A stretch of 43,811 bases of DNA from Geosiphon pyriformis uo1 (taxonomy: Eukaryota; Fungi; Glomeromycota): contig JAAOMT010000517.1 in assembly GCA_016748015.1 (NCBI GenBank), forward strand, positions 1-43,811, given 5' to 3'. The notes under the pieces were generated by a model. It did no database searches. It was not told where the DNA came from and saw nothing but the letters and a program-made list of their open reading frames with translations. Shown here in pieces: positions 7,577 to 41,133 of this stretch. Position 1 is the first letter of the stretch. Each line of letters begins with the position of its first letter. Made by a program: the position numbers and the translations under genes.

Positions 7577-8908
7577 TTAGTTACATTTGCTCATTAGTTG
7601 ACCAAAATAAGGTCCTTCGTTAGCTTTTAAACTTGCAATCGATACTTCTTGGGCTTTTTTGTTACATTCCTTTTGTGAATAAGTGAGGCGGTGAAATATT
7701 TAATAGTGCTTAATAATAAACTTAATTTCCAAAAATAAATAATTTAAAATCTTCAATTCATACCTGTGGCTCATTAATATACCCTGTATCATCTTCCAAA
7801 ACACCAAGACATTTATAAACATTCATTTTTAAAATACTGCAGTGACAATTGAAATCAATCCAATATTCAATCCCATGATGCCAGTATCCATAATGATCAT
7901 GGTTTGTGGGAATTTGAGGTATATAGTCACTTGAATAAGTAATACGATAAATAGCACCTAAATTTTTGTTCACATGTTCCGCAAATTGGAAATTACCCAT
8001 TCTTGGTGAGCCAAATGTGAAAACTTGGACTTCCAATCTTCTATGAAACTTTGTGAATTCTAATGCTGTCAAGACTGCGTATACTGTCATAAGATGAAAA
8101 ATAGATTCAGCTATATTTTTAAATTAAAATTAAAAAAAAATCTTGATTAATGTCAAAACTCACCACCACCAAAGTTATGTCCTGTCAAACTCAAACTCTT
8201 GAATGATACATTTCTTTTCAAGAAAGCACCCACTCTTTGTATTATGTTCTGCCACGCCTCATTAAACCTTTCCCAAAAATGGGAATCGACAAATCCATTG
8301 TATACATCGGGATAACCAACCATTGTTTTTTTGTTCAACATCCAAGATGGTTCTTTTGCCGCAAAATAGACAACCAACTCTTTGGCTTCTATGTTTGCAT
8401 ATAAACCAACTAGAAAATTTTGAAAGAATTATTGAAATTTTCTCCAAATTATTTTAGCTTCAAATCATTTTTTCAAAATAAATTTTTATCTACCGTAAAT
8501 ACCAGGTAAAATTTCTGTAACTTCTTTATCAGAGCAATAAGCCTGAGTTGCATATTCTGCAAAAAACGCGAATCGTGATAGCAGAGGATCATTCTTTGAT
8601 AGCAATATCTTTGTTAATTGGTGTTCCTTTATATTTTCAGAAATGAATTTCGAACCCTCTATTTTTTGTAGCCGCTCATTTTTTGAATAAAATTTTGGGT
8701 TTTGTGAATTTGATAGTCTTTTTGGAATCTGTACTTTTATTGACGATAAAAGTTTATTTTGAAAATTTTCCCGATTTAAAAATTGTCTGCGAGATAATAC
8801 ATTCTCACGCATTAAAGGAATCCTCGAAATATAATCTCTATCATATTGAACGGCTATGCAATAAACCCAAAAATTCAAAAAAAAAAAGAAGGCAAACACC
8901 ATGCCCAT
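7577..8908 (-). CDS. Lipase_3-like pseudoenzyme L1 (Ser->Asn; catalytic His absent)
   Basis: Exons 8908-8494, 8409-8164, 8083-7764, 7669-7577, all GT-AG and in frame. Signal peptide; AYC; TGHNFGG; TFGSPRMGN; SDYIPQIP; HHGIEYW; ANEGPYFG. Confidence 0.88.
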
Positions 8909-9379
8909 TATTAGAAGGTGATTTATTCCCTCTAAATCTAGGAAATAAATTTTTTTTGATTACTACCCATAAATATAGCATTTTTAATCAGTGATTCAAA
9001 TTGATTCGTTTTCCTGACACTAGCTTCAAAATTCGATTTCGACAAGCAAAAGTGAAACATTTTTTATGCTTTAAGAATAATTTGTACCAAAAGTCAATAA
9101 CTCAAAATTTGGGAGTCAAAGAAATTAGAGATAAGATTGTTTTCCCGATGCAAGGAATCTAGTTTGACGACGATAACTAGATATCTGATTCCTCGGACAT
9201 TGATCATCCCGATACATTTCTTATCAGCCACCAAATATCAAGGTTTGAGAAAAGTTGGTTTGCAAAAGTAAAATATCAAAACTTTGGTTTCTTCTAATAT
9301 TATAGTTACTTTAAGGGAAAAATTTTGAAACTTATATTTATGCAATAATAATCAAGCCTTCAAAGTCTTGGAAGATTTG

Positions 9380-13607: not shown

Positions 13608-14087
13608 TTAATGCCAACCAGTATATTTTATTCCGTTGTAATTTCCGTTTTTGTTGCCGTTATAAGATCCATGATTATAGTTACCGTTTAGGTTTCCGTT
13701 ATAAGATCCAAAATTATAGTTTCCGTTTAGGTTTCCGTTATTAGATCCAACATTATTATTGCCGTTGTAATTTCCGTTGTTATTACCAATATTGAAATTG
13801 CCATTATTATTGCCATTATTGCTTCCAATGTTATTATTTCCGTTGTTATTTCCATTATTGTTTCCAATGTTGAAATTACCATTGTTGTTGCCATTATTTG
13901 AACCTTGGTTACCGTTTCCGTTGTTGTTTCCATTATTGGATCCAACGTTGAAATTTCCGTTACTATTTCCATTACTGTTACCATTGTTAGGGCCGACGTT
14001 GAATTGGCCTCGCTTTTCAATTGGTTGGGCTAATACTAATACAGAGGCGACGAGGACCAAGGCAATGAAAAAGCTAATTTTCGACAT
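13608..14087 (-). CDS. Secreted Asn/Gly-rich 13-aa tandem-repeat protein B (159 aa)
   Basis: Signal peptide MSKISFFIALVLVASVLVLA-QP, then IEKR, then about 9 repeats xN(V/I/Q/F/H)GxxNGNxNGN. Paralog of 5300..5791 (shared KR-x1-3-FNVGP start). Confidence 0.9.
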   Translation of the reverse strand: MSKISFFIALVLVASVLVLAQPIEKRGQFNVGPNNGNSNGNSNGNFNVGSNNGNNNGNGNQGSNNGNNNGNFNIGNNNGNNNGNNNIGSNNGNNNGNFNIGNNNGNYNGNNNVGSNNGNLNGNYNFGSYNGNLNGNYNHGSYNGNKNGNYNGIKYTGWH

Positions 14088-15127: not shown

Positions 15128-16488
15128 TTAAAATTTTCCCATCATCTGGCCAAAATATGGACCTTGACGTAGCAGCTTCTTTACAGAAGAGTTTTTCCAT
15201 TCTTGGTCATTACAATCCTAAAAATGAATAAATAAAAAAATAAAAAAAATAAGCAAATGAATAATTCTTTCCTCCCCCCCCCCCTTCCTGAAAAAACAAA
15301 CCTTAGATTCATCCATATACTCATTCGGTCCTAAACACTTGTATAATTTTGTTTGCTCCTCTTCGCAAGCGCAATCACTTATTAGAGGTATCCAGTACTC
15401 GGTATTATGATGAAAAAAACCGTACGTTCCTGAAGCATGAGGGTAATTCGAAGAGTAATCATCAAAAAGAGTAACTCGATATACTTTAAATCTTTGATTG
15501 ACATGTTGTGCAAAACTTCGATTTCCAATCCTTGGAGCACCAAATGTGAACACCTCTATATCAAAGGAATTTTGCAGTCGAGAATCAATTGCTGCCATTT
15601 CTCTCAAAGCTGTTTTAAAATCAAGAGCTGTAAAAATAGCAAGTACTAATAGAAGCATTTTAAACGTTAGTTATTATTAAAAATTATCTTGAAAATCTCA
15701 CTATAATAAACTTAACTTCAATATACCACCACCCAGAAAATGCCCAGTAAAACTTATTTTTTTAATTCCCGGAAAACGTTTCAACGTTCGATAAATATTT
15801 TTGAAATTCTTATCTTTTGACTCTAAATAATCTTTGTAGGTCATTATCTCGACCATTGCCCCATGAACCATTTTATAAGGTGTCAACCTTTTAGCAGTAC
15901 CAAACCATTTACTATTTTTATGACGAATACTGACCACGAGAGTTTTTTCAAGTTCATCGACAGTAACTAGTTGAATTATAGTATATATAAGAATATTTAT
16001 TTAAATAATTTTAATCATGCAAGATAAATCATTTGAATTAAATTTTTTTTACCAAATATGTTAGATGGCTTCTTTTTTAAAGAGGCATAATATACCTTGG
16101 CAGCATAATATGCATGTAGCTCTATCTTTTTATAAATTATATCTTCCGGTGGAACAATTATCTTTGTTTCGGTACGAGTTATTTCATTTAGTTTGTCAGT
16201 CGTTGCCATTTTCAAAGGTAAATCCTGGTATTTAGTATTGAAAGAGTTCATTGAGAATGATTCATAATTTTGCTTTGATCTTTTAGCCAGGATTTTTGTA
16301 AAATTTCTCGAATATCCGTGAACTGATTTAGAAATTAACGATACATTGAAACTTTTTTCGACTGTATAATTGCTTCTCACTGCTTCTAATGTCTCAAAAA
16401 GCATATAGAAACATATAACTAAAATTATGATTAGAAACAAAACCCAAGGAAGAATATGAAAAATCTTGGATCGACTATTCTTTTTCAT
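15128..16488 (-). CDS. Lipase_3-like pseudoenzyme L2 (Ser->Phe; catalytic His absent)
   Basis: Exons 16488-16053, 15966-15727, 15645-15302, 15217-15128. N-terminal basic tail plus TM helix; TGHFLGG; TFGAPRIGN; HHNTEYW; CAC; LRQGPYFG. Confidence 0.85.
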
Positions 16489-19239
16489 CGAATACTTTTT
16501 GATCTTGAATGGAATTAAAAAAGATGATAACGCTTTTAAGTCTTTGGTATTTTCCCAAATAATGGATTATAAAAGAGTTTTTAAATTTGAAAAAAAATTA
16601 TTTCTTCCTATCAAGATTGCAATAAATAAATGTTTGACTCTTAGAAAAGGATCTAGATTGTAGGTTATTCTATTTGTTCACAAATGCCACGTTTCATTTA
16701 TTGGGATGAATGTTAAAAGATTAGCAGAATGATGTTTCTTGGTAACAACACAGGAAAACAAAAAAGATCAAGTCAATTTAATAAAGTAAGTAATAAAATA
16801 CTTGAAACAGAAAACAGTTTCAGAACAGTTTTTTTAATCGAAAAGAAACGTAGAAAAATTTTACAGAATTGATTTTCTTGATTTATGAATCAACAAAAAA
16901 AGTCAAGCAAGAAAAAATTCTAAATTTTTAAAATCGGTTTTGGAAGGATTCAATTGTTAAAACATGCAACGTTTTTTATAACTATATTGAATTTTTAATC
17001 TTTTATAAATCTCCATTGATTTGACACTATTTTTATTAATAAATTATGCCTTTTTCTGAAAATTCACAAGAAGCAAAATATCATTATACTTTTGCTTAAA
17101 AAACAACTAAACTTATTTGATTTCTTTTATTGACTAAATATTTCGAAATTTAAAATATTGATAACCATTTAAATGATAATTAAAATATTATTAGTGCAAA
17201 TATTTATAAAATGAATTAGGTTACAAAAGTGGTGGTTAAACTAGAGTAATTTGATAATTTGTTCGTTTTAAAATAAATCAAAGAATATCACAATTAAAAC
17301 TATAATAAAATTTGAAAAAGAAATTTATACATGTAAAAATATCCCATTACTTATTTTGTTACAAAGAAAAAAAAAAGATTTAAGAAAAATTTGTCACAAT
17401 TGCTAAATTCTTCAAACACAAAAAATATTTAGTGAGATAACTCATCAATTTATAATTATTTTTTAAAGGATAACTTTCAAATCGACGAAGATATTGAAGG
17501 GTTTTAATTTAATTATTTTATCTTTCTAACCTTATTATTTAAAGGATTCATTTATTTTGTGCATTCAATAATAAATGTACAAAGTTTTTGGAATTTGTTA
17601 TACTTCAATATTTATAAATCTTCTTTGCTTGTTTTTAGGATTTGGTTGATCATCACTTATCACAAAAATAACATTGATAAGTGATGAATATCAATAGATC
17701 CAGTTTATCTTTATCCTCATTAATTATTTTAGCATGGCACTGCACACAGTTTCTCGTCCCAGAGGTTAATACACATTCCAAATAGCAAGGGGTAACATTT
17801 AGGTCTGTGGACTTTTTAGATTTTCGAAAACTATGGTATCAGAAAACTTTTATTTTTCTCCTTTTTGTTTCACACGAAAAAGGTTGACTTGCGTCGTTAA
17901 TTAAAACGTCCAAAAATCGTTTCTTTCTACAAAGCTTTTAAGTATAAATTTTCATAAAATAAATTTTTAAAAATATTTTTATAATAATGATTTATAGGAA
18001 TTGGAATAGGAATATTATATTGATTTTCCAATCAATATACAATAAATAATAAATTAATAATGTATAGCATGAAACTTATATTTTTTTCAAAAAAAAAAAC
18101 CATATCAGTTTTAAACAATTTTTTAACTTTGTGATAAAATCAGCCAAAATTTTTGTTCAGCTTACAAAATACTATGACCAATTAATTTGTGATAATACTA
18201 TATATAATACTCATTATCATCTAATCTTGGAAATTTCAGATATTTTTCAGAGGTTGCTTCATTTTCAATAAAAATTAAAGAAACATCCCAATTAGCAGAA
18301 ACCAAAAAAATATTTTGATTGTATAAACTCTTTAAATCTTGTCTATATATATTTAACAAAATTTTTGATTTCTATTTTCCTTTTTATTTTGGCATTGTTG
18401 TTTTTTCTTGGTTCTCTGATGATATTCCTAATCTTTTGCCAGAATTAATGCCATTCGTTGCATTAATATTCTTTGAAACTAACCACCTTATTTATTTGAG
18501 CTCACTCCATAAAATTACGCAAGCACACCAGATATTGCGGGAGTTTTCTTATTTGTATTCAAGAATTATCTACAAACATAAAAGTAATGCTAATCAGACA
18601 TTCAATATTATTGAGAAATATTTAGACTTAACTAATAAACTATGTTTCATTTTGGGCTGCTTATATATAAAAGAATGAAGTAAGAGAACGAAGATGAAAA
18701 AGGAGAGATCTTGAAAATTTTTAGCATTTGAAAATAATCGAGGCTAGACTATTTTGGTCGTGCTGTATCTTAAACCCGTTATCAGTTTTAGTTTTATTTG
18801 GCGTGAAGTATCTTTTTATTTTGTTTAAAAAGAATAAAACAAAAAATTTATTCAATTGAACTAGGCTACAAAGGCGGATTCAGCATATGGGTACTCAAGT
18901 ACGGTTTCCCACAAATTGGAAACAAAATTTTTTGAAAATCACATTACTTTAATAGAAATTGGGATTATAGGAGTAACTGAAAAATAAATCATTAAATATT
19001 TTAGGAATGCACTTGTTTTCCGATTAAATAAAATCTAGTGGGAATCCTCATTTTAACTATCTTTTTCAAGATACGTAAAAGTTTTTCCGACCAACTTTGA
19101 GCATCTTATAAGATTTTGTATTTGAGGAAACTTATCTCTAAAATTTACGTTTATTTCTCAACTTTCAAAAAAATGTACATGTTAAACAAGAATTTTTATG
19201 ATCTTTCTCCTGACTTACTTATTTAAAGATAATTCTAGA

Positions 19240-20583
19240 TTACATACTCAATGTATTCATTCCTTTTCTACAATTACCCATCGTTATCCCAAAGTATGGT
19301 CCTAAATGTGCCCGCTCAGCTTCCTCATTACTTACAGCAAATTGTCTTTTATTGCATTTCTAAAAAAAAAATTAATTAATTCTCAAAATTGATAAACTTT
19401 TGAAAAGTTATAAATTTGTAACAAAACTTACTGGATTTTCACCAGCATTAAATCCATCTATCGCTCCAGTACATTTATAAACTTTGAAATTTTTAGCCTC
19501 TCCAAATCCATCCACAGACATTGGGCAATCACATCCCAAATTATTAATCCAATACTCGGTTTCATGATGAATATAATGCAAATTATCCAGATATAATCGG
19601 GAAACGTAATCGCTTCCGTTCGTTACTCGAAATATTTTCAAGTTTAGTTTGTTGATTTCCTCAGCAAATATTATACCACCTATTCGTGGTTGCCCAAACG
19701 TGACCACTATAACTTCTGGAAGTTTTACACCATTTGATTCTAATGGTGAATCCAGTACAGCCATCGCTGCAATAACTGCATATGCTAAAAAATTCAACCA
19801 ATCATATTAAAATAAAAATAAATGAACTTAAAATCAAAGAGCATTTGAGAATGCATACCACCCCCTATCCCATGTCCAGTGAAATAAATTTTTGATATGA
19901 GAGGATTATTTAAAAATGATTTAATTTTAGGCAAGATTAATGGGATCATTGAAGTAACTTCATTAGCCCAAGATTTCTCTATTAGAGCGTGTTGGTATGT
20001 GTGGCTTGAGAAAGGTAATTTAAATGGGGTAACACTTAAGGTTTTTTCCCGCCAATCTTTTGATGTATAAGAAGGGCCCTTAAAGAAAATAATTAAACTT
20101 GATGTTCTCACATCCAAATAAACGCTTGCTGGATTTTTATCAAAAGATTTTTAAACTAAATTTTCAATGAAAAACCGAAAAGCTTTTTTGAATTATTGAA
20201 AATTTACCAGATCTCTGGATTTCTTTCGTTGCAACATATTTCGTTGTGCAATAAGCCAAATTGGCAAAACGTGCCATTTTTGATAACATGTTCCAAGTTT
20301 CACCATATGGTTGGATTTCTTCTATCGGTGGGTAGACACCACTTCTTCTATTTTTTTTGTCCCAAAATTTTTCTATTAGAGGGGAGGTTATTTCAAACTT
20401 GGTAGTATTTGATAATTGACTTTCAGCCACTGGGATTATTTTCTCATCTTGAAGATATTTTTTTGAAACATCGTTAAATTTGATCCGACTAGACAGTTCA
20501 ACATTTATTTTCCAGATAAAAATTACCAGAGCTGAAAAAACTAGTATAAGGAATTGTGGTGTTTTATTTTTTATGAGAAACAT
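19240..20583 (-). CDS. Lipase_3-like pseudoenzyme L3 (Ser->Gly; His retained)
   Basis: Exons 20583-20208, 20128-19859, 19784-19432, 19359-19240. TM helix; AYC; FKGP; TGHGIGG; TFGQPRIG; SDYVSRL; CDC; AHLGPYFG. Confidence 0.88.
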
Positions 20584-23177
20584 CACGAAAGTCGAAATTA
20601 ATATTTTCAAAACAAAAATGAAATTTACAATAAAAACTTTTCATTTGCCACCTGGATATAAAAGTTTCATTAATTTTGAAACGATTTACCGTGGGTTGAT
20701 CCCAATTTTTAAATTCTTTAAAGTTTTTCCCGATTACAAAGGTTCGATCCATGAATAAAAATTTATTTTTACTGAAAAAATATAAAGTCATTTCAAGATG
20801 TAGAGTGTAAGGATAGCTTTTTAATTGTTTAATTTTGAAAATGAAACTCCATTCTGTTACCTTTAACTGAAGAATCGAAGATTTTTATGTTTAAATTTTT
20901 TTGAAAATTTTAAATCAGTTTCATAATATTTCCGAGCAAAATTTAGTTAAAACTCATACCCACATTAACGGAAAATTTTATTCTTAACCTTTATATCTTT
21001 GATATATTAAATTTTTCTTTTTTAATAATAGAAAAAAAAGAACATTCCAAGATAAAGTTGATGTTAATTTGTGAAACCAACTATTTTATTTGGTGAAACC
21101 GTTTGACCGGTTTTTAGTTATTTTTATTTCAAAAACTCCGTTCCCTGTTACCAGATCCAATTTATCCCAGGAAAATTCCTAAAAATAATAATATCAATAA
21201 AGGGAATTATTCTGGCGTCTATTTATAAGAATTCTCTGTTATAAACCGCTAAAAATTTTAACAATAAAAATTAATGACAGATATTTAACTAGGTTTCTAT
21301 TTACGTTACTTTCAAATTAAATTGTAAAAGAAATTGGAAATTACCCAACTTTCTAACAAACAAATAATAGTATGTGATATTAAATCCTTTAGAAATTGAG
21401 TAATTACGATGGCGTAAGTAACTATATCCATAATAAACGTAGAGATTTTAACATTTACTACGTTTCAAAAATTGGAAAGATAAATTTCAAAAATTGGCGT
21501 TTAGGAATATTCCTGGGAGCTTCGATTAAATTCTTTCGGATCTGTATAAAGAGGAAGGTAAACAATATTTTGATACGACTGGTTTAATCAAAGTATTATC
21601 CAAACAAATTTTTATTGTAAATGAAGGACGTGACATAATTCGTGGCAGCATACAGCTAGGTTCTCTATAAAATAATTAGCATTTTAGAAGTGTGATAAAA
21701 CATGGACAAAACTGACTATTTCCATAGTGAATAAAAAACCCTTTCCAAAAATTGAGAATATGATTATGACAAGAACAATTTTTCAGCTATTTACACAATA
21801 CCCCAATTCTTAGAATGACAGAAAGGTTAGAAATAATTTTTAGAAAGATCCCATCCTTTTCCAGAATAGTATTCTCTACAATCTAAATTCTTGCTAGAAA
21901 AAATTCAAACGGTAAATTTTTTTTATTTCTTCACAAATTTTGGAGAAATTTGCCTGAATTATACTTTTTACTCTGTTCCTCGTTAGAAGTGGTTTAATTT
22001 TTTATAGCTGAATTTGATTAAAATAAACCTAATATCAATAATTTAAATCTATTATCATTGCTGATAAGATTTTCTCATAAACCAAGATCGGGGGTATTTG
22101 AATGTTTAGACCAACAGTTTTGCCAAACGGTTTCCCCGACCATTAGAAAAAGGCGATCAATCAATATTTGCATCATAAATTCAAATTATTTCCATTTGGA
22201 GTCTAGAATGATCGTAGAATTGTCTTGATTAACTAAAATTCTGTTTTTTTCTTTTTAAGAAGGTGACAAACTATGGAGTGGGAAATTCAACAAGATCCAG
22301 AGTTCAATTTTTCTTTGAAAATTTTTTATTTTTTATTTCGATTACCTAAGAATCTTTGCTAATTGATTTTAATCTTCCCTAAACAAAGCTATACATGTAT
22401 CATGTGTCTCCGAAAGATTTATGCTTTCAATTAAAAATTTCACGCTATTGCTAACGAATAGCGATTGAATTTAATTCCTAATCAAAAACATCTAAGCAAA
22501 AAAAAACTAATTTCCAAATTATTAACCAAATTAACCTCACCGCAATGAATAATTTTTTGGCTTTATTTACGTAAAAATATTGACATAAAACATACTCTTT
22601 ACCGGACTTCAGATTCTTTGGGGCTTCACAAAATATTACGATTCTTGCCTAAAAAAATCTAAAAAATATTAATATGATTAATGAATGAATTTAAAACAAG
22701 CATTAAATTGACAGGAAACTTTTGATATTAAAAAAACTTTGGTTATCGAATCAAAAATGACAAGTCAGTATATTCAATTTAAATGGAATTTTTATTATTT
22801 CAACCCTTATGACCGAAAGCAAACTCCAACATTTAAAAATTATCGGATTTATCTATATTTTATCTGATTAAAGAATCTTTTGAAAACCAAGTCTAGGAAT
22901 TTTAAGTTTTTTCATATAGATTTCTATTCCCCCATCATTTTTTCGAGCAATATAATGAATCTTCATCACTACTCCATTTCTCCCACGTTAATAATAGATT
23001 AGGGGATAAACTGATTATCAAAAAACACTAAATGTATACGATCGAAGAGATTTTCCTTTTTTATTCGGGGATGCCTTGATAAACAAAAAATAAAATTATT
23101 GAATAAACTTTTTTAATAAAGATAAAACAGAATTACCAACTTCAAATCATTGAATTTGTATCTCTTTGGTTTTAAAA

Positions 23178-24623
23178 ATGCACGTCGGTAAAAAAGAAAT
23201 TCTTCAAAGAGTTCAACGTTATTTTCATGAACATCCAGAAAAAAAAAAGTTTATTGCTCACATTTGTTTGACTAGTTTAGTTTTGCTACATGTTATTTTG
23301 CTCCTTAATTACATCGGAAATTTTAAACTATATCTTATAAAAGATTCTGAACCAAAATCCAGGACAAGATCAGACAATTTACTTGGTCCTAATATAATAT
23401 CACTCGTGACAGAAGGCTCAGATTCTTTACGAAAGAGGTCATTCAACCTTGATCATCAGAATTTTACCTTGCCAAATTCCAGAACAGAAATTGATAAAAG
23501 ATCACAAAAGATACCCGAAAAAATCTTGATACAAGAAGACAACCCGCTATGGCAATATTTAAAGGAAATGGCGCATATTGCGAACTTGGGTTATTGCTCT
23601 ATAAACAATAATGTAGGAATTCAAGTGCCAGGAATTAAATGTAAGAAATTTATAAATTTTTCGGTATGTTGTATGATTGAAAAATCACAATATAATAAAT
23701 TTACTTGGAAAATTTTTTAGCTAACGTTTATCACGATCGCTCCCAACAAAAAATTATCGCTTATTTCACTGGATTTGAACGTAAACTTGATGATTGGTAT
23801 AATAGAAGATCACTTTCTCCAAAGGTTTTTTCTTTTGGTCATATATTTGGAGCAGAACGCGAAGCTTTCGTGGACGCAACTTGGCTATCGCATGTTGATG
23901 ACATGTTTCCTAGACTCAGAACTGAAATTCCAAAGTTACTATCGGCTGACCTACAAACTGTTGTATTTACTGGGCACGGAGCGGGTGGAGGTTTGTGATC
24001 TTAACTTTTAGTTTCCATTGGACAATTAAACCTTGCATTTACTCAATAATAACTTTGAACCCCTTTTTTTCCTTTTTCCTTTTTCCTTTTTCCTTTTTCC
24101 TTTAAAGCGTATGCAATACTTGCTGCACTCGAATTCAAAGTTTATATATCTGATCCGAAAAATTCTCGAAAATTTTCTTCTCTCAATATCAAGATAGAGG
24201 TGGTTACATTTGGTCAACCGCGTGTAGGATCAGTTTCTTTTGCTCAAGCTGTAAATGATGTGGACATTGAGATCTACCGAGTTACACATAAGAATGATTA
24301 TGTTTCGAGGCTTCAATTACCCAGATCTGGTGTCATTTCTTTTAGACATCACCCTACAGAATACTGGCTCACCGATACTTCTTGTGACTGTCCTGACGAA
24401 GCGGTTTCAGCCCAATTGTATATGTGTTCTGGTCTCGAAGAGCGTCAAGTAAATATAGAAATTTTTGCTTCTTTTCAAAATTAAACTGAAAATGTTATCT
24501 TATTTTTTAATCATTTCAAAATAGGATTGTAATGCTGGACAAACCGGAGATAACGAGTCATCATTTTCTAACCATAAAGGTCTTTATTTTGATGTTGAAT
24601 TTGGCAAATGTAACAACAAATGA
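23178..24623 (+). CDS. Lipase_3-like pseudoenzyme L4 (Ser->Gly; His retained)
   Basis: Exons 23178-23640, 23721-23990, 24108-24448, 24525-24623. TM helix; GYC; TGHGAGG; TFGQPRVG; NDYVSRL; CDC; NHKGLYF. Confidence 0.88.
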
Positions 24624-25278
24624 CGATGCCTTTTCGCTCTCATCTTGCACAACCATTTTGTTGAAATATTCTTTACAAAAATGGTTTATTGAACCACGAA
24701 AAATATACATTTTAGTAGATCTTCGTTTTATATTGGAGAAATAAATAAACAAAACTTAATTTCATAAATTTCACATTTAATTTATTTCTTTTAAAAATCT
24801 AAGATAATGGTTTAATATTGATCCAAAAATAATCTTTTATGCATTGATACATCAGTTTATCTCATAATATTCTCTTCACTTTATTCATAAAATAATGAGC
24901 AATGTAATTAGTATATTTGACACATCTTTTTAAAAAAAACAGATATAAGACTTTTATAATTGGTAATTCTCCCAAAAAAAAAGCAATTTATTCATTAAAT
25001 TTTTGGTTTTCTGTTTGTTTTTTTTAAAGTAAAAGTTATCATTAAAAAAGTTATGTGCAAATATAAAAAAAATTATTTTCTAAATAATTGTTAATTAAAT
25101 GGTTAAATGTTATCATAACTTATATTTGTTTTTTCAATATCTTGGTAAATTTATACTTAAAAATTATATTGGTTATTAAACCATAAAATAATTTAATAAT
25201 AATGCTATATAACTTGTTTTTTTATTCAATATTTATATTTATTATGTATTGTTAAATTCTGGATATTTTTAAATTTTT

Positions 25279-26648
25279 TTAACTTTTAAATTTTTTACTT
25301 AAACACTCTCCCATTTTGTATCCAAAATAAGGACCTAGTTTTTGTTGCCCACGAGTCTTCTTTGGAGCATTTTTATTACATTCCTAAAAAAAGGGTATTA
25401 GGAAAAAATTAAAAAAACTTCAATAACTAATTAATTAATTAATTAATTAAATGTCTACTTCTGGTTCTCCAATATATCCCAAAGGTTTCCGTACACCGAT
25501 ACATTCGTAAATCTCTTCTTTTCCAAGTTTACAATCGCAATTATTCCCAATCCAAATTTCTACGGTATGATGAAAATATGTTGTATTTCCTTTTTGTGAG
25601 GGAAATTGCGGAATGTAATCATCTTGATAGGTAATTCTCCATACTTTTTGGATTAAATTATTCTGAATCTCAATTTGATTTAATTCTTTGTTTACAAAAT
25701 TTGAAAATTCCCAATCACCAAAACGTGGTGAACCGAATGTTAATACTTGGATGTCTGGGTAATGAGGGAATGGTCTATTTTTTTTCAGACCCTTAATAAC
25801 CAGTTTTGATTGAGAGTCTTTTTGAACCCTTTTAAAATCTAAAGCTGCAAATACCGCTAACACTTTATTTTAAATTTGAGTTTGAAAGAAAATTAAAAAT
25901 TTCACGCTTAAAAAAGATGCAAATAATTTTGAACAAACAAGGTTTTCTCAATATTTTAACTTACCACCGCCGAGGTAATGACCAACAAATATAATTTTAT
26001 TAATATTTTTTCCCGCCCCCCAAAAGTTAAGAAATTTGTTTACCAATTTTTGCTTGAAGGTTTCATATTTATTGTATAATTCTTTATCAACCCGAGCTTT
26101 TGGCTCATTTTGATACTGAATCAACTCTTTAGGTAAAACACGCCATCGACTTCTGGTGTGATGGAAAGCAATGTAGAGAACATTTTCAACTGGATAAAAA
26201 CCAACGTACACTCCTTGACTTAATTTATCTGGCTCATGTGACAAACAGTAGGCTGCACTAGCAAATTGAGCTGCAGTTTCCAGTCTGGGTAAAAGTGAGC
26301 TATTTTTGGGAATTAAAATCTTTGTCTGGACTTGTTTTTCGTTTCGTTTCAACGGCCAAGAAATATTTCTTTATTTGAAAAAAAGGAATTATGGTGTATC
26401 GAAATTTGTGACCAAAATTCATTGCAATTTTTTATTCACGTTCAAACCTACTTTAAAACTTGGCCGGTCAACGACCAAGGTTCTGAAGACACTGTTTTTT
26501 TAGCATGAAAGGTAAAATTCTCAAAACTAATGTGTATTTCTGGCTTTATAAAATATATGCAAAAACCCCATAATAACAGAATATGTACAAGAGAAAAATA
26601 ATTTTGTTGCCAAAGTGTCCTTTGCAAAAATTCTAAACTACGTGTCAT
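25279..26648 (-). CDS. Lipase_3-like pseudoenzyme L5 (Ser->Tyr; catalytic His absent)
   Basis: Exons 26648-26452, 26368-25965, 25862-25459, 25383-25279. The first intron (26369-26451) is inferred because it restores the frame. AYC; VGHYLGG; TFGSPRFG; DDYIPQFP; CDC; QKLGPYFG. Confidence 0.8.
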
Positions 26649-28331: not shown

Positions 28332-29311
28332 NNNNNNNNNNNNNNNNNNNNNNNNNNNNNNNNNNNNNNNNNNNNNNNNNNNNNNNNNNNNNNNNNNNNN
28401 NNNNNNNNNNNNNNNNNNNNNNNNNNNNNNNNNNNNNNNNNNNNNNNNNNNNNNNNNNNNNNNNNNNNNNNNNNNNNNNNNNNNNNNNNNNNNNNNNNNN
28501 NNNNNNNNNNNNNNNNNNNNNNNNNNNNNNNNNNNNNNNNNNNNNNNNNNNNNNNNNNNNNNNNNNNNNNNNNNNNNNNNNNNNNNNNNNNNNNNNNNNN
28601 NNNNNNNNNNNNNNNNNNNNNNNNNNNNNNNNNNNNNNNNNNNNNNNNNNNNNNNNNNNNNNNNNNNNNNNNNNNNNNNNNNNNNNNNNNNNNNNNNNNN
28701 NNNNNNNNNNNNNNNNNNNNNNNNNNNNNNNNNNNNNNNNNNNNNNNNNNNNNNNNNNNNNNNNNNNNNNNNNNNNNNNNNNNNNNNNNNNNNNNNNNNN
28801 NNNNNNNNNNNNNNNNNNNNNNNNNNNNNNNNNNNNNNNNNNNNNNNNNNNNNNNNNNNNNNNNNNNNNNNNNNNNNNNNNNNNNNNNNNNNNNNNNNNN
28901 NNNNNNNNNNNNNNNNNNNNNNNNNNNNNNNNNNNNNNNNNNNNNNNNNNNNNNNNNNNNNNNNNNNNNNNNNNNNNNNNNNNNNNNNNNNNNNNNNNNN
29001 NNNNNNNNNNNNNNNNNNNNNNNNNNNNNNNNNNNNNNNNNNNNNNNNNNNNNNNNNNNNNNNNNNNNNNNNNNNNNNNNNNNNNNNNNNNNNNNNNNNN
29101 NNNNNNNNNNNNNNNNNNNNNNNNNNNNNNNNNNNNNNNNNNNNNNNNNNNNNNNNNNNNNNNNNNNNNNNNNNNNNNNNNNNNNNNNNNNNNNNNNNNN
29201 NNNNNNNNNNNNNNNNNNNNNNNNNNNNNNNNNNNNNNNNNNNNNNNNNNNNNNNNNNNNNNNNNNNNNNNNNNNNNNNNNNNNNNNNNNNNNNNNNNNN
29301 NNNNNNNNNNN
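28332..29311. other. Scaffold gap (980 N)
   Basis: Run of n. It probably hides the 5' part of lipase-like gene L6. Confidence 0.99.
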
Positions 29312-29322
29312 TTAATAATTAG

Positions 29323-30248
29323 GGCCAGAAATGATTAAAAGCCAAATAGAAAAAACCAAGTTTACACTAGAAAACTTCCTCCCTGATATGGGAGCTAAAA
29401 TTCCAATAAGATTTGATTCAAATTGGTGGAGATCATTGCCAGATGACTGTTTGAAACTGTTTGACGGTAGAATACAACGCGCTCTAATGATATTAACTGA
29501 CATAGAAGCGAATAAATCGATTCGTATTGTTTTAAGTGGACATGGTATTGGTGGATGTAAGCAATTATTAAAAATTTTGATTTATTCTTTTTCAAGCAAA
29601 AGTTTAAAAGTTAGTAGCTGGGATCCTAACTATATAGTTTAATTATGATATTAGTTTATGCAGAAATATACGGCTTGTTATTGATATCTCATCCAAGATA
29701 TAATGAAAATATTTCTACTACTATTATAACATTTGGCTCTCCACGTCCGGGAAATTCTCAGCTTGCAGCTCAATACCAGCAAAGGCTTAGAATTGGTCTC
29801 AGAGTCTACAGGATTACACATTCCAATGACTATTTCCCTCATTTTCCAAAGATATCAACCGATGGTAAACTATATATGCACCCTGGTACTGAGTATTGGA
29901 TTCCAGATAGTAATTGTAATTGCCAAGATCCTGATGCTTCCAAACTTCTTCGTGAAGGTTATGATATTATCTATGAATGTCCCGAATTTTCACTACAGGA
30001 TAAAAAAAAATATGGCGAAAATACGGTATTTATAGTTTTTATCAAAAAAAGGCTTTTATATAGAAAGTTATTTTAATTTATTATTTTAGAGTGTTATTAA
30101 GTAAATATAAAAATAGCTCATTTATTTAACTTTTTTGTAGGAATGCAATTTAGGTACTGATGGTAAAGGAACAAGAGCTCATTTCGGCCCTTATTTTGGA
30201 GTGACATTTGGAAGTTGTGAAGAGTATTATCCTATTGGTAGAATTTAA
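29323..30248 (+). CDS. Lipase_3-like pseudoenzyme L6, 5'-partial (Ser->Gly; His retained)
   Basis: Visible exons ~29323-29556, 29655-30025, 30141-30248. SGHGIGG; TFGSPRPGN; NDYFPHFP; HPGTEYW; CNC; AHFGPYFG. Confidence 0.85.
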
Positions 30249-31605: not shown

Positions 31606-33061
31606 TTATTCCCCGATCAAATTTCGTGTATCACATAAACCCATGACGACCCCGAAATAGGGCCCTTTGTGAGCCTTGTACGCTGTTTTATCTTCCCCTT
31701 TTTGGCCGACATTACATAACTTTTGAAAGGAATTAACAGAAAATCCCAAGTTAGATTGATGTAATAAATCGGTTTTTTCTGATTACCATCACTAACCGGA
31801 TGTTCTTCCGAACTGGGGCAAGTATAAAGCTTGAAATTTTCCATTCCAATTTCTTCTTCTGATCCTTGAACATTGGCCTGACCAGCACAATTACAATCTC
31901 TCACATCAATCCAAAACTCCAATCCATGATGCATGTAAAAAAAATCATTTCGAGGTGGTAATTGTTTTCGGGGAACATAATCATTGGCATTTGTTACACG
32001 CGCAATCAAGATTCCCAGTTCATTAACAGCACGAGCGAATTTGGCTGTTCCAATCCTCGGTTGGCCAAAAGTTACAATTGCAGTTTGGAGATCTTTGAAT
32101 TTTCCGTTTCCTTTTGATTTTTCAATTTCAAAGTAAAGTCCTGCTAAAAGGGCGTATGCTTTTATAAGATTGTGACAGAAATAAAAAAATTGACTAAATT
32201 AGATATTTCAATTATAGACATAAAAGCAATATCTACACAGCCTTAACTTTACAGAATATTTAAGATTACCTCCACCAACACCATGACCCGTAAATATGAG
32301 CTTTTCATAATTTTCGTAATTTTGAATTTTTCGATACAATTGAGGCAACATAACTTGTACATCCATATTCCAAATTTTGTCAACCAATGTATTATCAGGA
32401 GGTCTATTAAAGAGAGAACTAAAATCAAAATTTACTAAAACTTTTGGTCGCATTTTCCATTCGTTGGGACTCAAATTTTTTCCCCAAAAATAAGCAATAA
32501 TTTCTTTTTCGTTTGGGACTAGATGGATCTCAGCTATAGAAAGTAATTAAACTAAATTCATAAGAAATCTAAAAAAGTTGCATCAAAGTCTCCAGCCTGG
32601 GAATACTTTTAAAAAAATTTTTAGTTACCAATTTTATCGGGAGCCTCGTTTCCATTTGTAGGACTACAGTACCCTAGTGCTGCTACCTGTGCCATGCGGG
32701 CAAGTAAATCCCATGGCCCCGTATGAGGGGAGACCTCAATAATTTTCTGCGTTTTTAATGTAACTCGAGGTTGTTTTGATTTACCAAAAAAGTAAAAACT
32801 TGATTCCAACTTAGATCTAAAATTGCGAGAAAATGCGTTTCTTGGTGATAATCTTGGATGTAAATTTAACCAATTGCTGATATTATATTGGTTTTCTTCA
32901 GGGGTTCGACTTAGGAATTCAAAAGATTTGAGGGAGTTAAAAAATTTGTTGTAAAATAATATTATCACTATAAATAAAAAGAATGTATAAAGTGAGGTTT
33001 TATGAAAAACTATCTTGAAATTTTTTCTGACGTTACTTCGAGAAAAATTTATGAGATACAT
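31606..33061 (-). CDS. Lipase_3-like pseudoenzyme L7 (Ser->Gly; His retained)
   Basis: Exons 33061-32629, 32533-32270, 32158-31797, 31719-31606. TM helix; GYC; TGHGVGG; TFGQPRIG; NDYVPR; CNC; AHKGPYFG. Confidence 0.88.
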
Positions 33062-35547: not shown

Positions 35548-36336
35548 TTAATCTTCAGTGACGACACCGATAGATTTCAGAGTAGCTACAATTTCTTCGG
35601 CTGGAACGTTTTCATCATATAATGAAGTCCATGATACTGCGGCACCGGTATACAAGGCAGGGGCAGCGAACGCTGTAACTCCGGCGGGGAATAAAACCGG
35701 TATCAATATTACGGCAATCAATGCCGCCGTCGTACCAATAATTAGGAACGGATGAGCAAGAACAAATTGTTTTGCTTCGTTAAACGCGGTCAGAAATGGA
35801 TTTTTCGATTTGCCACTACCATGACGAATATTAGCATTATGAAACGATCCACTTCTACCGTGAAGATGTTTTTGTTTCTCATGGAACGAATTAACCATCC
35901 TACTAACGTCAACATGTGGGTGATAATTCGTTAAATCAAGAGTATAAATTCTTGAGGCTGGATGTTCTAATCTTCCATTCTTGTCACCATTATGATAAGT
36001 CATTGCCAATTCTTGCGTTAGTGCCCGAGCACCATCGAGGCTTGATGCTTCAGAAGTGGATGTTTCAAGAATGAATTGGAATTTTTGAGTTACAGGGAAT
36101 GGTTGTACCACGCGAAATACTTGAAGAAAAGTTTGTACTGATTTTTGATCGGATAATACTAATCGTTGAATGGTGAATATTAAACGGTCATCGACGAGAT
36201 CAATTGAAAAGTATCGATTGAAAGCTGCTTTGTTGGTGCTTCTATTCATTCCTGTATTTGGTGGTAAATGTCCATTACGAACAAAAGCGTCAAGTAAAGC
36301 AACCTCGAATAGTTCTGTGTCTGATAGTTGAACCAT
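35548..36336 (-). CDS. Hypothetical intronless protein (262 aa) with a C-terminal hydrophobic/TM region
   Basis: Long ATG-initiated ORF with ordinary amino-acid composition in a higher-GC patch. Hydrophobic segment FLIIGTTAALIAVILIPVLFPAGVTAFAAPALYTGAAVSW. No family recognised. Confidence 0.8.
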   Translation of the reverse strand: MVQLSDTELFEVALLDAFVRNGHLPPNTGMNRSTNKAAFNRYFSIDLVDDRLIFTIQRLVLSDQKSVQTFLQVFRVVQPFPVTQKFQFILETSTSEASSLDGARALTQELAMTYHNGDKNGRLEHPASRIYTLDLTNYHPHVDVSRMVNSFHEKQKHLHGRSGSFHNANIRHGSGKSKNPFLTAFNEAKQFVLAHPFLIIGTTAALIAVILIPVLFPAGVTAFAAPALYTGAAVSWTSLYDENVPAEEIVATLKSIGVVTED

Positions 36337-37861
36337 ATTGAAGTGAATTCAAAGTCTAATGAATGAGAATGAAAGAAGATTGGACTGGATTAGATTGGAT
36401 TGGGTTGAATTGAATAGACAGGAGCAAACAGTTATTTCTCGTGTAGATAAAGAAAAAAATAGAAAATTCAAGTAAACATCTATCTGAGTGCCAGTTCAAA
36501 CTTACTAAAAGTCAAATAGAAAATTTAAATTTCGAGACAAAAACCAGTTTAAAAACAAGTATCAAAGAATTCGAGAAAAAAAATCAAGATTAGGTTTTTT
36601 AAACGCTACAACAATTTCAAGAAAGAAGGGTTATATATATTTATTCAAAGTCCTAACAATATCTTCCTTTTTTTTTTTTTGATAATACCTTTTAATCGAA
36701 TAATAAAAACTACTTCAAATAATCGTCTGTAAAACAATTTAACTCTTTATGATAAAAAAAACCATTAGTCCTACTCGAATTTTGTACGCATCACGCTCTT
36801 CGTCTCCTTTTCAGTGTTTTCTTCTATTATACTTTCGAATTGCTCGACAATGCCATTCCGCTACCCTTATCAAACACATCAGCAGGTATCTAAAGCAAAG
36901 CAAGCAATGTGTAAGCAAGAACAAAAAGAAACAGCAGATGCAGGAGTTATAATCACCTCAACTCCTAATAAAAGGTAATATTCATGCTTAATAAGGTTAA
37001 AAGAGACGAGAGGAAAATTATGCTTTGAGCCCCGGGAATTAATTTGATTATACTTGGCAGAAAGTGGATTTTTACCATAGTAAGTCTTTTCTTGCTTGCT
37101 TGCTTCTCAGTGTATAGAACAAAAAATTGAGATAAGACTTTTCTTTAACTATGAGTTGAACGGTTGATAACTTCTCCCAAAAAGAGGTTGTTTTTCTACC
37201 TGTTTGATCATGATCAGCATCTGAAATTGACGCCGTCCTTTTACAAACTGGGAAACAATTGTTTAACAATGCGATATTCACGACAGGCACCAAGTGAATC
37301 ACTACTTAATCACATTATGTAAATAATGATTGTATATGAATCGACTGATCACGAGTCATCCGGAGTAAAATGGTAATTATATTTTATTAACCTAATGTTC
37401 AATCTAAACAGTGGATGCATGTTGGCGCACATGTATGTTGGCGTATATTAGAGGAAGAAATTTTCATGCAACTGTTATTTGCATTGGGCTTTTTTTATAA
37501 TATCAAAATTTCTTTGCTAAACTATCGATTTAAGTTCAAAATTTCAAAAAAAATTTTGTTCATGATATGATGATAATGACCAAAGACTAATAAAAATAAT
37601 GATTCCCAAAAGGTCAGCTGAAGGAATTTTATAAAGTTCGAAATTTCGGGTTCCCTCTAACGCATAAATTAAATGAGAGTTTTGAAAGCTTCACATGCTG
37701 CAGAAGAAGGTTTTAGGTTAAATGACGAGCTTAAATAACTCCCTTAGGTTAGTGAACTTTGGTGAAGATTTTCGTTTTTTGATTCGCTACAAAACCTGGC
37801 AAACTTTTTTGAAAGCATTTTACTCACGTGGCTAATAATTTAGAAATGATTTATAATGTGC

Positions 37862-37871
37862 AATGATGATG

Positions 37872-37904
<33 letters not shown>

Positions 37905-37960
37905 GTAATAATAATAATAAAGTATTATTATTATTATACTATTATTATTTTTATTATTTA
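37862..37960. repeat. (AAT)n microsatellite immediately followed by an (ATT)n tract
   Basis: aat repeats to 37920, then tattattatt... to ~37960. Confidence 0.9.
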
Positions 37961-38265
37961 CTTATAATAGTCCTTTCGGAATATATTGCCGAATCGATTT
38001 AATCTTGCATGCATTATAAAGAATTTTACCTGAAAAGTTTTTAAAAAGAAACCATTTGCGAAACTAAATATTCACACATACTTGGTTCTGGTGGTATGGT
38101 ATGAAAATCAAAAATTACCAAGGTAATTTCAAGGGGCTCAAACAAAATAGAACTCTAGTTTCAAATAAATGCCGATTGATTTTACCAAATATATATTGTG
38201 CAGGTTAATTCTAGTCAGGTTTTTCTTAAAAAAGACCCGATTATTAAAATAATATTTTTATAATC

Positions 38266-38316
<51 letters not shown>
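38266..38316. repeat. (AAT)n microsatellite
   Basis: Uninterrupted aat run. Confidence 0.95.
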
Positions 38317-38317
<1 letters not shown>

Positions 38318-39448
38318 TACATGTGATTGGTTTCAATTTTTGTCATTTAGGTTTTTAATTTTCTAGCATTTTGGGCGTTCTCGATACGATCCACTTTTCG
38401 AGAAAATTGCTTTTTGGTTATTTCATTTTTTTTATTCGGGAAAAGTTTGATCAATAATTTACCTCATGAAACTAAAAACACTTGTAATCGGTTCATATGA
38501 CGACACTTACGATATCAAGTATAGTTTAATTTGCTACTCATTTCTAATCTTTTAGTTTTCACCTGTCACGGTTAAATTTTAATCCTTTTAGAAAACCTCT
38601 ATCCCTTAAGTTTTCTTAAATGGAAATTTTTCAGCTGAATCAAAACTCAAAAATTTGCTTTTGATAAATTTTGTACGGAGGAAGAAAATTGGTTTGCCCA
38701 AAGATGAATTTCAATTGAATTATAAAAAAATAAGAATATTTTGGATTGAATTTTAAAAATGCCAATATTTGTAAAAAAAATTTGAAATTATTTTTTCAAA
38801 GTAAAATAGGCTGCTTATAAAAAGAAAAAGTAAAAATCTTTACCTATCACAAATCTTGGTATTTGAACTGTTATCGCAATCGATATATTTTCCTCGGTAA
38901 TAAACTTTCATGCTATTGTTTGCTTTCACCCCTAAATTATTTATTTTGATAGTATCAATCTATTTTGAAGATTTAACCTTTTTTTCTAGTTTTAAAAATG
39001 TTGTGTTTCGGGGAGTTAGTTAATTTATTTGAAAAGAATACTTTACAAATATAAAATAAGTTGTTAAAATTTTTTGAGCCTTATCATGACTGATGATCAT
39101 GCATTTCAAGGCTTGCACTTTTTGACAGAGAAAAAGGATGACAAACTAAAAATATTAATCTTTTAAAGCGTGATTCAAATGATAAAGTGATAAAATAATA
39201 AATAAACTTTTTATAATAAATACAAATATTTACATTTCAAAGCAAATTGTAAGAAATGTAATTTTTTCTGTAACAAACTTTCTATAAATACTTTTGTGAA
39301 TCTCAAAGAATCAATACCTCAGATGTAAAAAGATGTTCCGAATTTGAGTCGATGATTTAAACCAAAGGATTTCGAAATATCCAATTCGACAACTTAGAAG
39401 GCAAGTAATTGTAACTTAATTGAAAAACTTTTTATTCAATAGTTAGAT

Positions 39449-41133
39449 ATGATTTCTAGATTCTTTTTTTCCTTTAACTTAGATACAAATTTGGATAGAC
39501 TTTTACGATACTTTTTAAGAGGAGCAGCAACAATTGTGGTTACTATAAGTTCATTACTTTTGACCGCATTCATCTTGTCCAAATCAAATTCTGATACTTC
39601 TAGAATATACACCTATAATGGTACTCAATTAAAATCTATGATTGAGAAAATTCCTTTGAAGATTGGAATATCGGAAAAGTTGTTTCATAAAACGACAAAC
39701 GTAAATAATAAGCTCTCGAATCTTGAGTGTGATGGTGCAAATATTTTGAATTCTTCAAGAATATCATCCTTTTTCCAACAAAAATTTTCGAATTATAAAA
39801 AATTAGTAAGAAGAAATGAAATCTCAAACCCATCAAATATTGAAGAACAATCGAATTCAATCAAAGAAGAATCCCCTACTTTAATATCGAGTAGAAAAGA
39901 TCCCAATTATAAGTGGGATACATATCCAATCAAAAGAAGGATTAGTCATAAAGAGAGTTTAAAACTCATGAAAAGAATGACAATAGCAGCAAACTTTGGT
40001 TATTGTTCAAAAGAAAATACAATTGGTGAAATTTTATTTAATTCTGATATAATTGGTAACTTTCCAATTCATTTAAAAAATTCGATGCCTTCAAATAAAT
40101 AAATAAATTTTATTTATCGCTACAAATTTCTAAAAACCTAGCTGATGCCTATTTGGATAAAGTTGAACATGATTTGGTCGTGTTCTTTAAAGGACCGACA
40201 CTTAACCTCGATGAATGGAAACAGAGAAAAATATCACTCTCTCAATTTAGTAACAAAGGTCCTCTACCAATATTTGGAAATGTTGATACTGTTTGGAATC
40301 GCCAAGTTAAAATCATGATGCCAGGATTAATTAAAAAAGTAAAAAGTCTATTGGAACATCTTTCGAATTTTAAAAATGGACAAAATCTTGATCAGTTTTC
40401 TCCCAAAATCATATTGACTGGACATGGAATAGGTGGAGGTGAGTATTATCAGAATCTATTTGATATTAAAGGATTCAAAATCCTTTTTTAATAAAAGATA
40501 ATGATATTTTAATTTATTTATCTACTTTAGCTTTTGCTGTCATTGCAGGCCTTTATCTAAATCAAGAAGTTAAAGGATTTGGACATAGATGGTCATTACC
40601 AATCCACGAATCACAAATCAAAGTAGTCACTTTTGGTCAACCACGGATAGGAGATTCAACATTTGCTAGTTTAGTTGAAAAAGAAATATTTGTCTACCGA
40701 GTAACATTTAGATATGATCCTATCCCACGATTATTTCTTCCTCGATCAACCTTTATTCATCACTACAATGAATTTTGGATTGCTGAACCTGACTGCAATT
40801 GTCGATCAACCCCAGAAGGTGTTCGTACCATTGATGGGAAACACGTTGTCTATGATTGTAAAGGTTCTAAAAAAAGACACCTAAAAATTGGTGAAAATTT
40901 GGTGAGTCATAGAACTTGATGTTTCAACCCAATTTTTTATATTTGATAAAATTATAATATTCTTAATTTTAATTTTAAAGCATTGCAATGCAGACCCCGA
41001 AATTGAAGTTACTAATGATATGAAAATTCATTGGGGTCCTTATTTTAAACAATACTTTGGGGACTGTTTGGCTATGAAAAGAAATAAAGCCATTATTTGG
41101 GGACCCCCTTTGAATACCCCTATTGAAAATTAA
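39449..41133 (+). CDS. Lipase_3-like pseudoenzyme L8 (Ser->Gly; His retained)
   Basis: Exons 39449-40055, 40142-40438, 40531-40901 (missing from the ORF track), 40981-41133. TM helix; GYC; FKGP; TGHGIGG; TFGQPRIGD; YDPIPRL; HHYNEFW; CNC; IHWGPYF. Confidence 0.88.

Follow-up and report, generated by a model that had tools for sequence, protein, structure and literature searches.

A Geosiphon pyriformis scaffold with an array of class-3 lipase paralogs that lack the nucleophile serine

The fungus Geosiphon pyriformis carries on one of its scaffolds an array of class-3 lipase paralogs (Pfam family PF01764, Lipase_3) from which the nucleophile serine is missing. The window analysed here is this whole scaffold at its full length of 43,811 nucleotides (nt) (43.8 kb; contig JAAOMT010000517.1, G000:C494 in our numbering); it is AT-rich, with about 28% G+C, and belongs to an assembly of 128.3 Mb in 792 contigs. 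The published G. pyriformis assembly is given as 129 Mb in 795 scaffolds with 29.25% G+C (PMC9453076). Eight paralogs, c1 to c8, lie on both strands between positions 7577 and 41133 and are 26–39% identical in exon 3, their best-conserved exon. An original prediction, made from the sequence without database searches, had described them as an array of intact but catalytically dead lipases.

Eight lipase genes without the nucleophile serine

As predicted, a six-frame motif scan of the window finds eight GHxxGG motifs in a lipase context, and none of them has the serine of GHSxGG. The genes built around these motifs, together with the assembly gap that interrupts the array, are as follows (aa, amino acids; TM, transmembrane):

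c1: 7580–8908, minus strand; 354 aa in four exons (8908–8503, 8409–8164, 8083–7764, 7669–7580), TAA stop, hydrophobic N-terminus; motif GHNFGG at 8165–8182 (minus)
c2: 15131–16488, minus strand; 369 aa in four exons, C-terminal 276 aa identical to database protein P0021, TM anchor at residues 12–30; motif GHFLGG at 15728–15745 (minus)
c3: 19243–20583, minus strand; 372 aa, identical to P0014 (G9A89_003822), with Gly212, Asp274 and His351 (in AHLGPYFG); motif GHGIGG at 19860–19877 (minus)
c4: 23129–24620, plus strand; 390 aa, corresponding to G9A89_003823 (P0017) with a corrected donor, ATG at 23178, histidine in NHKGLYFD; motif GHGAGG at 23972–23989 (plus)
c5: 25282–26648, minus strand; plausible complete model of 369 aa, C-terminal part identical to P0022 (G9A89_003824); motif GHYLGG at 25966–25983 (minus)
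assembly gap: 28332–29311; 980 N, removing the 5′ part of c6
c6: 29319–30245, plus strand; 3′ two-thirds of a gene, 238 aa, exons 29319/29323–29556, 29655–30025 and 30141–30245, histidine in AHFGPYFG; motif GHGIGG at 29538–29555 (plus)
c7: 31609–33061, minus strand; 390 aa, C-terminal 268 aa identical to P0016, TM anchor, histidine in AHKGPYFG; motif GHGVGG at 32271–32288 (minus)
c8: 39449–41130, plus strand; 475 aa, TM anchor, long low-complexity stalk, histidine in IHWGPYFK; motif GHGIGG at 40420–40437 (plus)

Seven of the eight copies yield complete ATG-to-stop models of 354–475 aa with three introns of 72–117 nt each. In all eight, a phase-1 GT-AG intron follows immediately on GHxxGG, and a second conserved intron lies just before the exon that starts [EDKHL]-C-N, with exactly one in-frame solution in each copy. 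The models agree with the database proteins P0014, P0016, P0018, P0021 and P0022 where these exist. In c5 the N-terminal anchor exon is joined via a proposed 83-nt intron (26451–26369, predicted), and there is no intron between the AYC segment and the oxyanion strand. For c8, P0018 agrees from residue 24 onwards and its annotated 5′ extension is doubtful: the annotated start uses two tiny exons (37673–37717 and 39376–39399, plus strand) up to 1.8 kb upstream, and the in-frame ATG at 39449, followed by the membrane anchor, provides a simpler beginning.

The eight intact spliced frames of the original prediction thus become seven complete models and one copy, c6, that is cut by the assembly gap. 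Its open frame runs from 29319, 8–11 nt past the run of N, with a likely acceptor at 29321–29322, and its relatives P0027 and P0030 have 77–143 more N-terminal residues. No 5′ exons of c6 were found in the 1.6 kb to the left of the gap (tblastn, expectation value (E) up to 50) or elsewhere in the window (genome search with P0030). Since it cannot be shown that the gene runs on in frame through the gap, c6 is not called intact and is treated as a 3′ fragment.

The nucleophile position is occupied by glycine in c3, c4, c6, c7 and c8, by asparagine in c1, by phenylalanine in c2 and by tyrosine in c5. When c3 and the family profile are aligned to solved lipases with HMMER, the glycine coincides with Ser144 of the lipase from Rhizomucor miehei and with Ser146 of that from Thermomyces lanuginosus, in line with the prediction that the proteins are disabled at the nucleophile. 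Three synonymous codons encode the glycine, GGG in c3, GGA in c4 and c8 and GGT in c6 and c7, as had been noted; taken together with the low identity between the paralogs, they show that the substitution is old, as had also been proposed. The oxyanion motif F-R-G-[ST] is altered as described earlier, to FAAK (c1), IRHK (c2), FKGP (c3 and c8), FTGF (c4), FHHT (c5) and FWGK (c7). Because the nucleophile serine is replaced and the oxyanion residue is changed as well, ester hydrolysis through the standard acyl-enzyme mechanism would not be possible, and, judged from these residues, standard lipase catalysis is excluded in the serine-less copies.

The remainder of the active site is kept to a varying degree. 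Downstream of each GHxxGG motif follow FGxPRxG, the aspartate motif, HHxxE[YF]W and GPYFG, which had been listed as largely conserved. The catalytic aspartate (R[IV]Txx[x]D) is retained in all eight copies and aligns (HMMER) to Asp203 or Asp201 of the solved lipases. HHxxEYW does not contain the catalytic histidine, since its counterpart in the Rhizomucor enzyme is LHAGSEYWI. Instead, the catalytic histidine is placed in the last exon, where A-H-x-G-P-Y-F-G...G-x-C corresponds to D-H-L-S-Y-F-G...G-L-C plus one residue. Five copies (c3, c4, c6, c7 and c8) have H-x-G-[PL]-Y-F, whereas c1 reads NEGP, c2 RQGP and c5 KLGP at this place, and for the latter three copies the predicted conservation of the motifs does not extend to the histidine.

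Fold, predicted membrane anchor and family

The array proteins belong to the same sequence family as the R. miehei and T. lanuginosus lipases, with the family profile matching the Thermomyces enzyme at E 1e-32. Database searches used single exons or matching database proteins as queries rather than joined spliced models. Against the curated Pfam cut-off of 22 bits for Lipase_3, the exon-3 pieces of c1–c6 score 33–45 bits and the annotated proteins of c2, c3, c5, c7 and c8 score 61–67 bits; the exon-3 pieces of c7 and c8, when tried by themselves, gave no Lipase_3 match in Pfam. The evidence for the fold comes from an AlphaFold2 model of c3, calculated with an 87-sequence family alignment, which has a mean predicted local distance difference test score (pLDDT) of 80.6 and exceeds 90 in the core. 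Its best Foldseek matches are the Rhizomucor, Rhizopus, Yarrowia and Thermomyces lipases and Aspergillus feruloyl esterase A, with E of 1e-12 to 1e-14 and template modelling scores of 0.63–0.76 against the solved fungal lipases. The superposition on R. miehei lipase that the original prediction had proposed is close: residues 86–364 of the c3 model align with residues 5–269 of 3tgl (VIA-align, Z 26.2, root-mean-square deviation 3.0 Å over 242 residues), so that the fold is shared over the whole mature enzyme. Further shared features are the terminal cysteine pair AYC...C, the lid tryptophan (Trp88 of the Rhizomucor enzyme), TFGxPRxG, the aspartate loop and, by motif, the H..YFG..G.C end. Unlike the Rhizomucor and Thermomyces enzymes, the Geosiphon proteins have Gly, Asn, Phe or Tyr for the serine, a different oxyanion residue and one extra residue between the histidine and YFG; they are without the cysteine-loop insert after AYC, and an anchor and stalk take the place of signal peptide and propeptide.

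All seven complete models carry a hydrophobic 19-mer within their first 45 residues (Kyte–Doolittle mean 1.7–2.95). The complete proteins thus consist of a hydrophobic segment, a variable and poorly conserved stalk (low pLDDT in the c3 model) and the lipase domain, which has six conserved cysteines. The first, N-terminal cysteine and the last, C-terminal one are both present in 101 family domains and both missing in c2 (the AYC cysteine and the C-terminal one); two cysteines that form a disulfide outside the cytoplasm would be expected to behave in this way, being kept or lost together. The extracellular location put forward in the original prediction is therefore plausible from the N-terminal hydrophobic anchor and the cysteines; the lipid-binding, lipid-shuttling, sensor or decoy roles that it also suggested are hypothetical.

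That the family is expanded, as predicted, is clear from the genome. A DNA pattern coding for GHGxGG has 329 genome matches versus 30 for the reversed control, which excludes chance, and patterns coding for GHSxGG have 22 and 41 matches (63 in total, 41 of them with an AGY serine codon) versus 6 and 5 in the controls. These counts suggest roughly 300 genes of the glycine type and about 50 serine-type paralogs in the same genome, compared with a handful of class-3 lipases in the known fungal cases. A first look for Lipase_3 in the genome gave 783 candidates, where most of the scored matches span only the half of the domain that follows the nucleophile. The exon-3 profile was also run exhaustively with HMMER against 1.84 billion representative proteins and found 364 of them at E ≤ 1e-10. 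The best 150 proteins, with a few extra matches and the window models, make up a set of 197 domains in which the residue at the nucleophile position was tabulated. Glycine occupies this position in 139 domains, serine in 19, alanine in eight, arginine and phenylalanine in five each and other residues in seven, with a gap in 14. The aspartate is present in 184 of the 197 domains and the histidine in 127, another 44 being truncated there. The commonest combination is Gly-Asp-His (104 domains), and FRGS or FRGT occurs in only eight.

G. pyriformis is the source of all 50 family proteins whose source name was looked up, including every glycine-type one. Only four of the best 150 proteins come from elsewhere (Coemansia, Panaeolus, Massospora and an insect record), and all four have the serine. 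Word-indexed protein searches with P0014 (16 matches) and with profiles A2 (19) and A3 (7) returned almost exclusively Geosiphon proteins and carry little information on other taxa; no transcript-derived copies were among their matches. On these database matches, the glycine-type family seems confined to Geosiphon. A literature search found no paper that links Geosiphon with Lipase_3, PF01764 or class 3 lipases, and none that describes serine-less lipase homologs in this fungus; the search did not cover the genome paper in Current Biology (2021), which may mention an expansion. The GenBank label of the array proteins that were looked up is 'hypothetical protein' (for example G9A89_003822), contrary to the expectation that automated annotation would call them active lipases.

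In a tree of 149 domains, c3, c4 and c7 fall into one all-glycine clade and c8 and c6 into two others, and c1, c2 and c5 belong to a clade with a variable residue (N, Y, F, E, R or G) at the nucleophile site. Serine-type Geosiphon members are scattered among the glycine clades, which amounts to eight changes, at least six of them forced by well-supported branches. It is important to point out that the tree has no outgroup and does not give the direction of the changes between serine and glycine; an AGY serine codon and a GGY glycine codon are one transition apart. Expansion of the family proceeds through tandem duplication, with birth and death of copies. The subfamily of c6 is young and comprises at least eight genes that are 60–67% identical. 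It mixes N-terminal architectures: P0030 (G000:C634:90890–93507, minus strand; loci L001, L002 and L007) has a signal peptide and a Ser/Thr-rich domain of about 120 residues that replace anchor, stalk and AYC segment, and P0027 keeps the AYC-type start. Recent duplicates lie head to head at G000:C787:1480597–1481880 (minus) and 1482734–1484015 (plus; loci L019–L025), with a synonymous divergence (dS) of 0.06; their first ~170 residues are identical, and their differences are dense in two patches, the lid segment after FKGP and the loop before the TFGQPR strand, which could reflect a gene-conversion mosaic or local positive selection.

Selection, expression and the surrounding scaffold

The window paralogs are too diverged for an estimate of dS; therefore, the ratio of non-synonymous to synonymous divergence (omega) was obtained from the young c6 subfamily and from two other young subfamilies. 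By a counting method, c6 and its seven relatives give dS of 0.21–0.68 and omega of 0.35–0.90. A maximum-likelihood codon model of the c6 subfamily (eight genes, 218 codons) estimates omega at 0.51 and rejects omega = 1 with twice the log-likelihood difference (2dlnL) at 38.7; the second subfamily has an omega of 0.49 (2dlnL 9.3) and the third 0.43 (2dlnL 29.4), and omega = 1 is rejected in both. A neutral simulation at the observed divergence leaves a copy free of stops with a probability of 0.06, and the frames are open in all eight copies of the c6 subfamily; 27 of its 72 invariant codon columns contain synonymous changes. Constraint along the domain, expressed as the ratio of the proportions of non-synonymous and synonymous differences (pN/pS), is strongest in the aspartate loop (0.14–0.26) and in the histidine loop with the C-terminus (0.18–0.30), followed by the nucleophile elbow (0.38), and pN/pS exceeds 1 in surface helices and loops. 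Only a few exon-3 matches genome-wide contain stops. That seven paralogs with just 26–39% identity keep start, stop, splice sites and motifs speaks strongly against decay. Overall, the codon comparisons describe a regime of birth and death with moderate purifying selection that is focused on the old active-site elements.

Transcripts were checked for the stretch of c3 and c4 (19200–25199) in one public run, X1, the only run that contains part of it. A 912-nt contig with a depth of 28.5 lies on c4 in three blocks (23329–23640, 23721–23988 and 24106–24439); it is spliced at intron 1 (23641–23720, GT..AG, 80 nt) and intron 2 (23991–24107, 117 nt) and leaves the glycine codon of the nucleophile site unchanged. 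The splicing check that the original prediction had asked for thus holds for c4; c3 is without a contig in this run. The annotated c4 donor of P0017, which would give GHGA|AYA, is rejected, as the transcript contig supports the conserved donor and GHGAGG-A-YA. The contig also differs from the scaffold by C>T at 23472. A second c4 contig ends at 23129 with ten loose letters, which resemble the tail of a template-switch cDNA oligonucleotide; we take this to mean that the run would be cDNA and that 23129 would be an mRNA 5′ end. The first ATG past this position is at 23178. Intact frames and splice sites, the rejection of omega = 1 at estimates of 0.43–0.51 and the transcription and splicing of c4 agree with the prediction that the genes are not decaying pseudogenes.

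Apart from the array, the scaffold holds the following features:

1–770: satellite at the scaffold end, adjoining c9; about 16 units of 41–51 nt with higher-order periods of 174 and 225 nt
c9: 1037–1150, minus strand; cut-down remnant of a lipase exon 3 (YGQPRVG), outside the array (7577–41133), without nucleophile exon and with 97% identity over 38 aa to the paralog P0054 elsewhere in the genome
5150–5791, plus strand, and 13608–14087, minus strand; two related open frames in opposite orientation, with 39/78-nt tandem repeats that encode Asn/Gly-rich units of 13 residues and no Pfam match
6505–6813, minus strand; weak match to a DDE_3 transposase that does not reach the Pfam cut-off (E 4.5e-5), taken as a remnant and flanked by the Asn/Gly repeat gene and c1

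We place both repeat-bearing frames inside the lipase array. The idea that the lipase genes are transposon cargo was set aside, as one weak DDE_3 remnant is all that the window holds and the copies are old and diverged.

Possible roles of the serine-less proteins

The array genes probably encode non-hydrolytic, membrane-tethered, extracytoplasmic ligand-binding proteins, a reading that includes receptor-like or adhesin-like roles and to which we assign a probability of about 0.6, arguing from sequence and predicted structure. A short cytosolic N-terminus would be followed by one anchor or signal segment, the stalk and a lipase domain which, being held by conserved cysteines, would face the cell exterior or the lumen of a compartment. 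The serine has mostly given way to glycine, which suits the strained nucleophile elbow better than any other residue, and the former active-site cleft would still bind a ligand, most plausibly a lipid or another hydrophobic molecule. Rather than enzymes, the proteins would be tethered binding modules acting as receptors, as adhesins or as partners of the active serine-type paralogs. Purifying selection holds the core, and surface helices and loops diverge rapidly. Continued use of the cleft is suggested by the constrained aspartate and histidine loops and by the conservation of the lid, and the membrane anchor, the cysteines, the very high copy number and the rapidly changing surface point the same way; the glycine at the elbow is explicable by backbone strain alone. 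Within this reading, it is a tentative possibility that the family forms a large, fast-diversifying repertoire of surface receptors or adhesins for partner lipids or envelope components, be it those of the Nostoc endosymbiont at the symbiosome membrane or of other microbes; ligands would then bind in the constrained Asp/His cleft, and their range would be set by the variable loops of the lid and surface.

There are precedents for lipase-like proteins that bind rather than hydrolyse. The plant proteins EDS1, PAD4 and SAG101 also use a class-3 lipase-like domain without hydrolysis; EDS1 and PAD4 superpose on the c3 model with a Z of 17–19 (VIA-align) and are matched by the family profile at E 1e-8 to 1e-11. 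EDS1 and PAD4 keep the serine. The plant proteins have a C-terminal EP domain, are cytosolic or nuclear, form heterodimers and are few per genome, whereas those of Geosiphon stop at the end of the lipase domain, have an N-terminal anchor and number in the hundreds. No EP domain is present in the complete models, which stop 10–40 residues past the H..YFG..C motif; Pfam finds only Lipase_3. By analogy, neuroligins, gliotactin and neurotactin are membrane-tethered alpha/beta-hydrolase ectodomains, and in neuroligins the serine has become glycine and the domain serves binding, not catalysis; however, these cholinesterase-like adhesion molecules are of the carboxylesterase type B and not Lipase_3, are animal proteins of type I topology and form small families. 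ABHD5/CGI-58, another analogy, is an alpha/beta-hydrolase that has asparagine for the nucleophile serine and binds and activates a real lipase, ATGL; it differs in belonging to another subfamily, in being cytosolic on lipid droplets and in being encoded by a single gene.

Several observations weigh against the ligand-binding reading. For a protein with a fixed task, omega values near 0.5 are high, and the family has dead members, among them a C468 copy with a stop and GRGIGG and the fragment c9. The anchor and the topology are read off a hydropathy scale only, and the histidine was matched to His257 by motif homology, with a one-residue insertion, and by the span that the structural alignment covers, rather than at the level of single residues. 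In c1, c2 and c5 the histidine is lost too, and their clade varies freely at the nucleophile position; the cleft may not matter there. The c4 contig is without 2 nt at 23600 (TCTATA to TCTA), which would shift the frame and end it shortly after the GYC motif; this deletion may reflect allelic variation, a change towards a pseudogene or a mistake in the assembly. To these points the missing c3 contig can be added, which does not show that c3 is silent.

Many of the same observations would be expected if the genes were mostly functionless cargo that tandem and segmental duplications have multiplied in a genome rich in repeats, weakly constrained and with many copies becoming pseudogenes: omega reaches 0.9 in single pairs by the counting method and lies at 0.43–0.51 in the codon models, the C468 copy and c9 are broken, the c4 transcript has its deletion and c3 is without a transcript contig. 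We nevertheless consider this improbable given that neutrality is rejected in all three subfamilies, that the seven diverged paralogs have all retained their three introns along with start, stop and motifs, that the eight young copies are open where neutrality would leave each of them open in 6% of cases and have accumulated synonymous changes in invariant codon columns, and that stops are few among the exon-3 matches. Equally improbable in our estimation is that the proteins are still enzymes, in which the His-Asp pair would directly activate either a water molecule or a group of the substrate, the exchange of serine for glycine having widened the cleft (a new chemistry, as hydrolase, lyase or transferase), or whose members would toggle between serine and glycine by the single AGY/GGY transition. 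The strong constraint on the aspartate and histidine loops, the predominance of Gly-Asp-His and the nesting of serine-type members inside glycine clades with at least six changes and a majority of AGY codons among the serine pattern matches would all fit, and nucleophile-independent alpha/beta-hydrolases do exist, such as cofactor-free dioxygenases and methylketone synthase 1. Yet the oxyanion motif has changed as well, c1, c2 and c5 are missing the histidine, backbone strain by itself accounts for the elbow glycine, and we know of no such nucleophile-free chemistry in the Lipase_3 family. An unlikely role, though a less improbable one than these two, is that of regulatory partners which bind, activate, inhibit or localise the ~50 serine-type paralogs in the way that ABHD5/CGI-58 acts on ATGL. 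The nesting of serine-type members of the same architecture among the glycine-type clades and the asparagine that c1 shares with ABHD5 at the nucleophile position speak for it; the window, however, contains no serine-type gene, and some 300 dead copies would be set against about 50 active ones.

Non-catalytic alpha/beta-hydrolases are known as single genes or small families, while the roughly 300 serine-less lipase-fold genes estimated here would make up more than one in a hundred genes of one fungus. As a consequence, Pfam-based counts of 'lipases' for this genome would be dominated by proteins that cannot be lipases. G. pyriformis is to our knowledge the only fungus that houses cyanobacteria inside its cells, and it is a close relative of the arbuscular mycorrhizal fungi, which depend on host lipids. 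A putatively surface-exposed family of this size that is under selection and most constrained at its former active-site loops points to a binding function tied to this lifestyle. If the tentative receptor or adhesin repertoire were true, it would represent a new kind of recognition family in fungi and might contribute to the way in which a fungus auxotrophic for fatty acids lives on a cyanobacterium.

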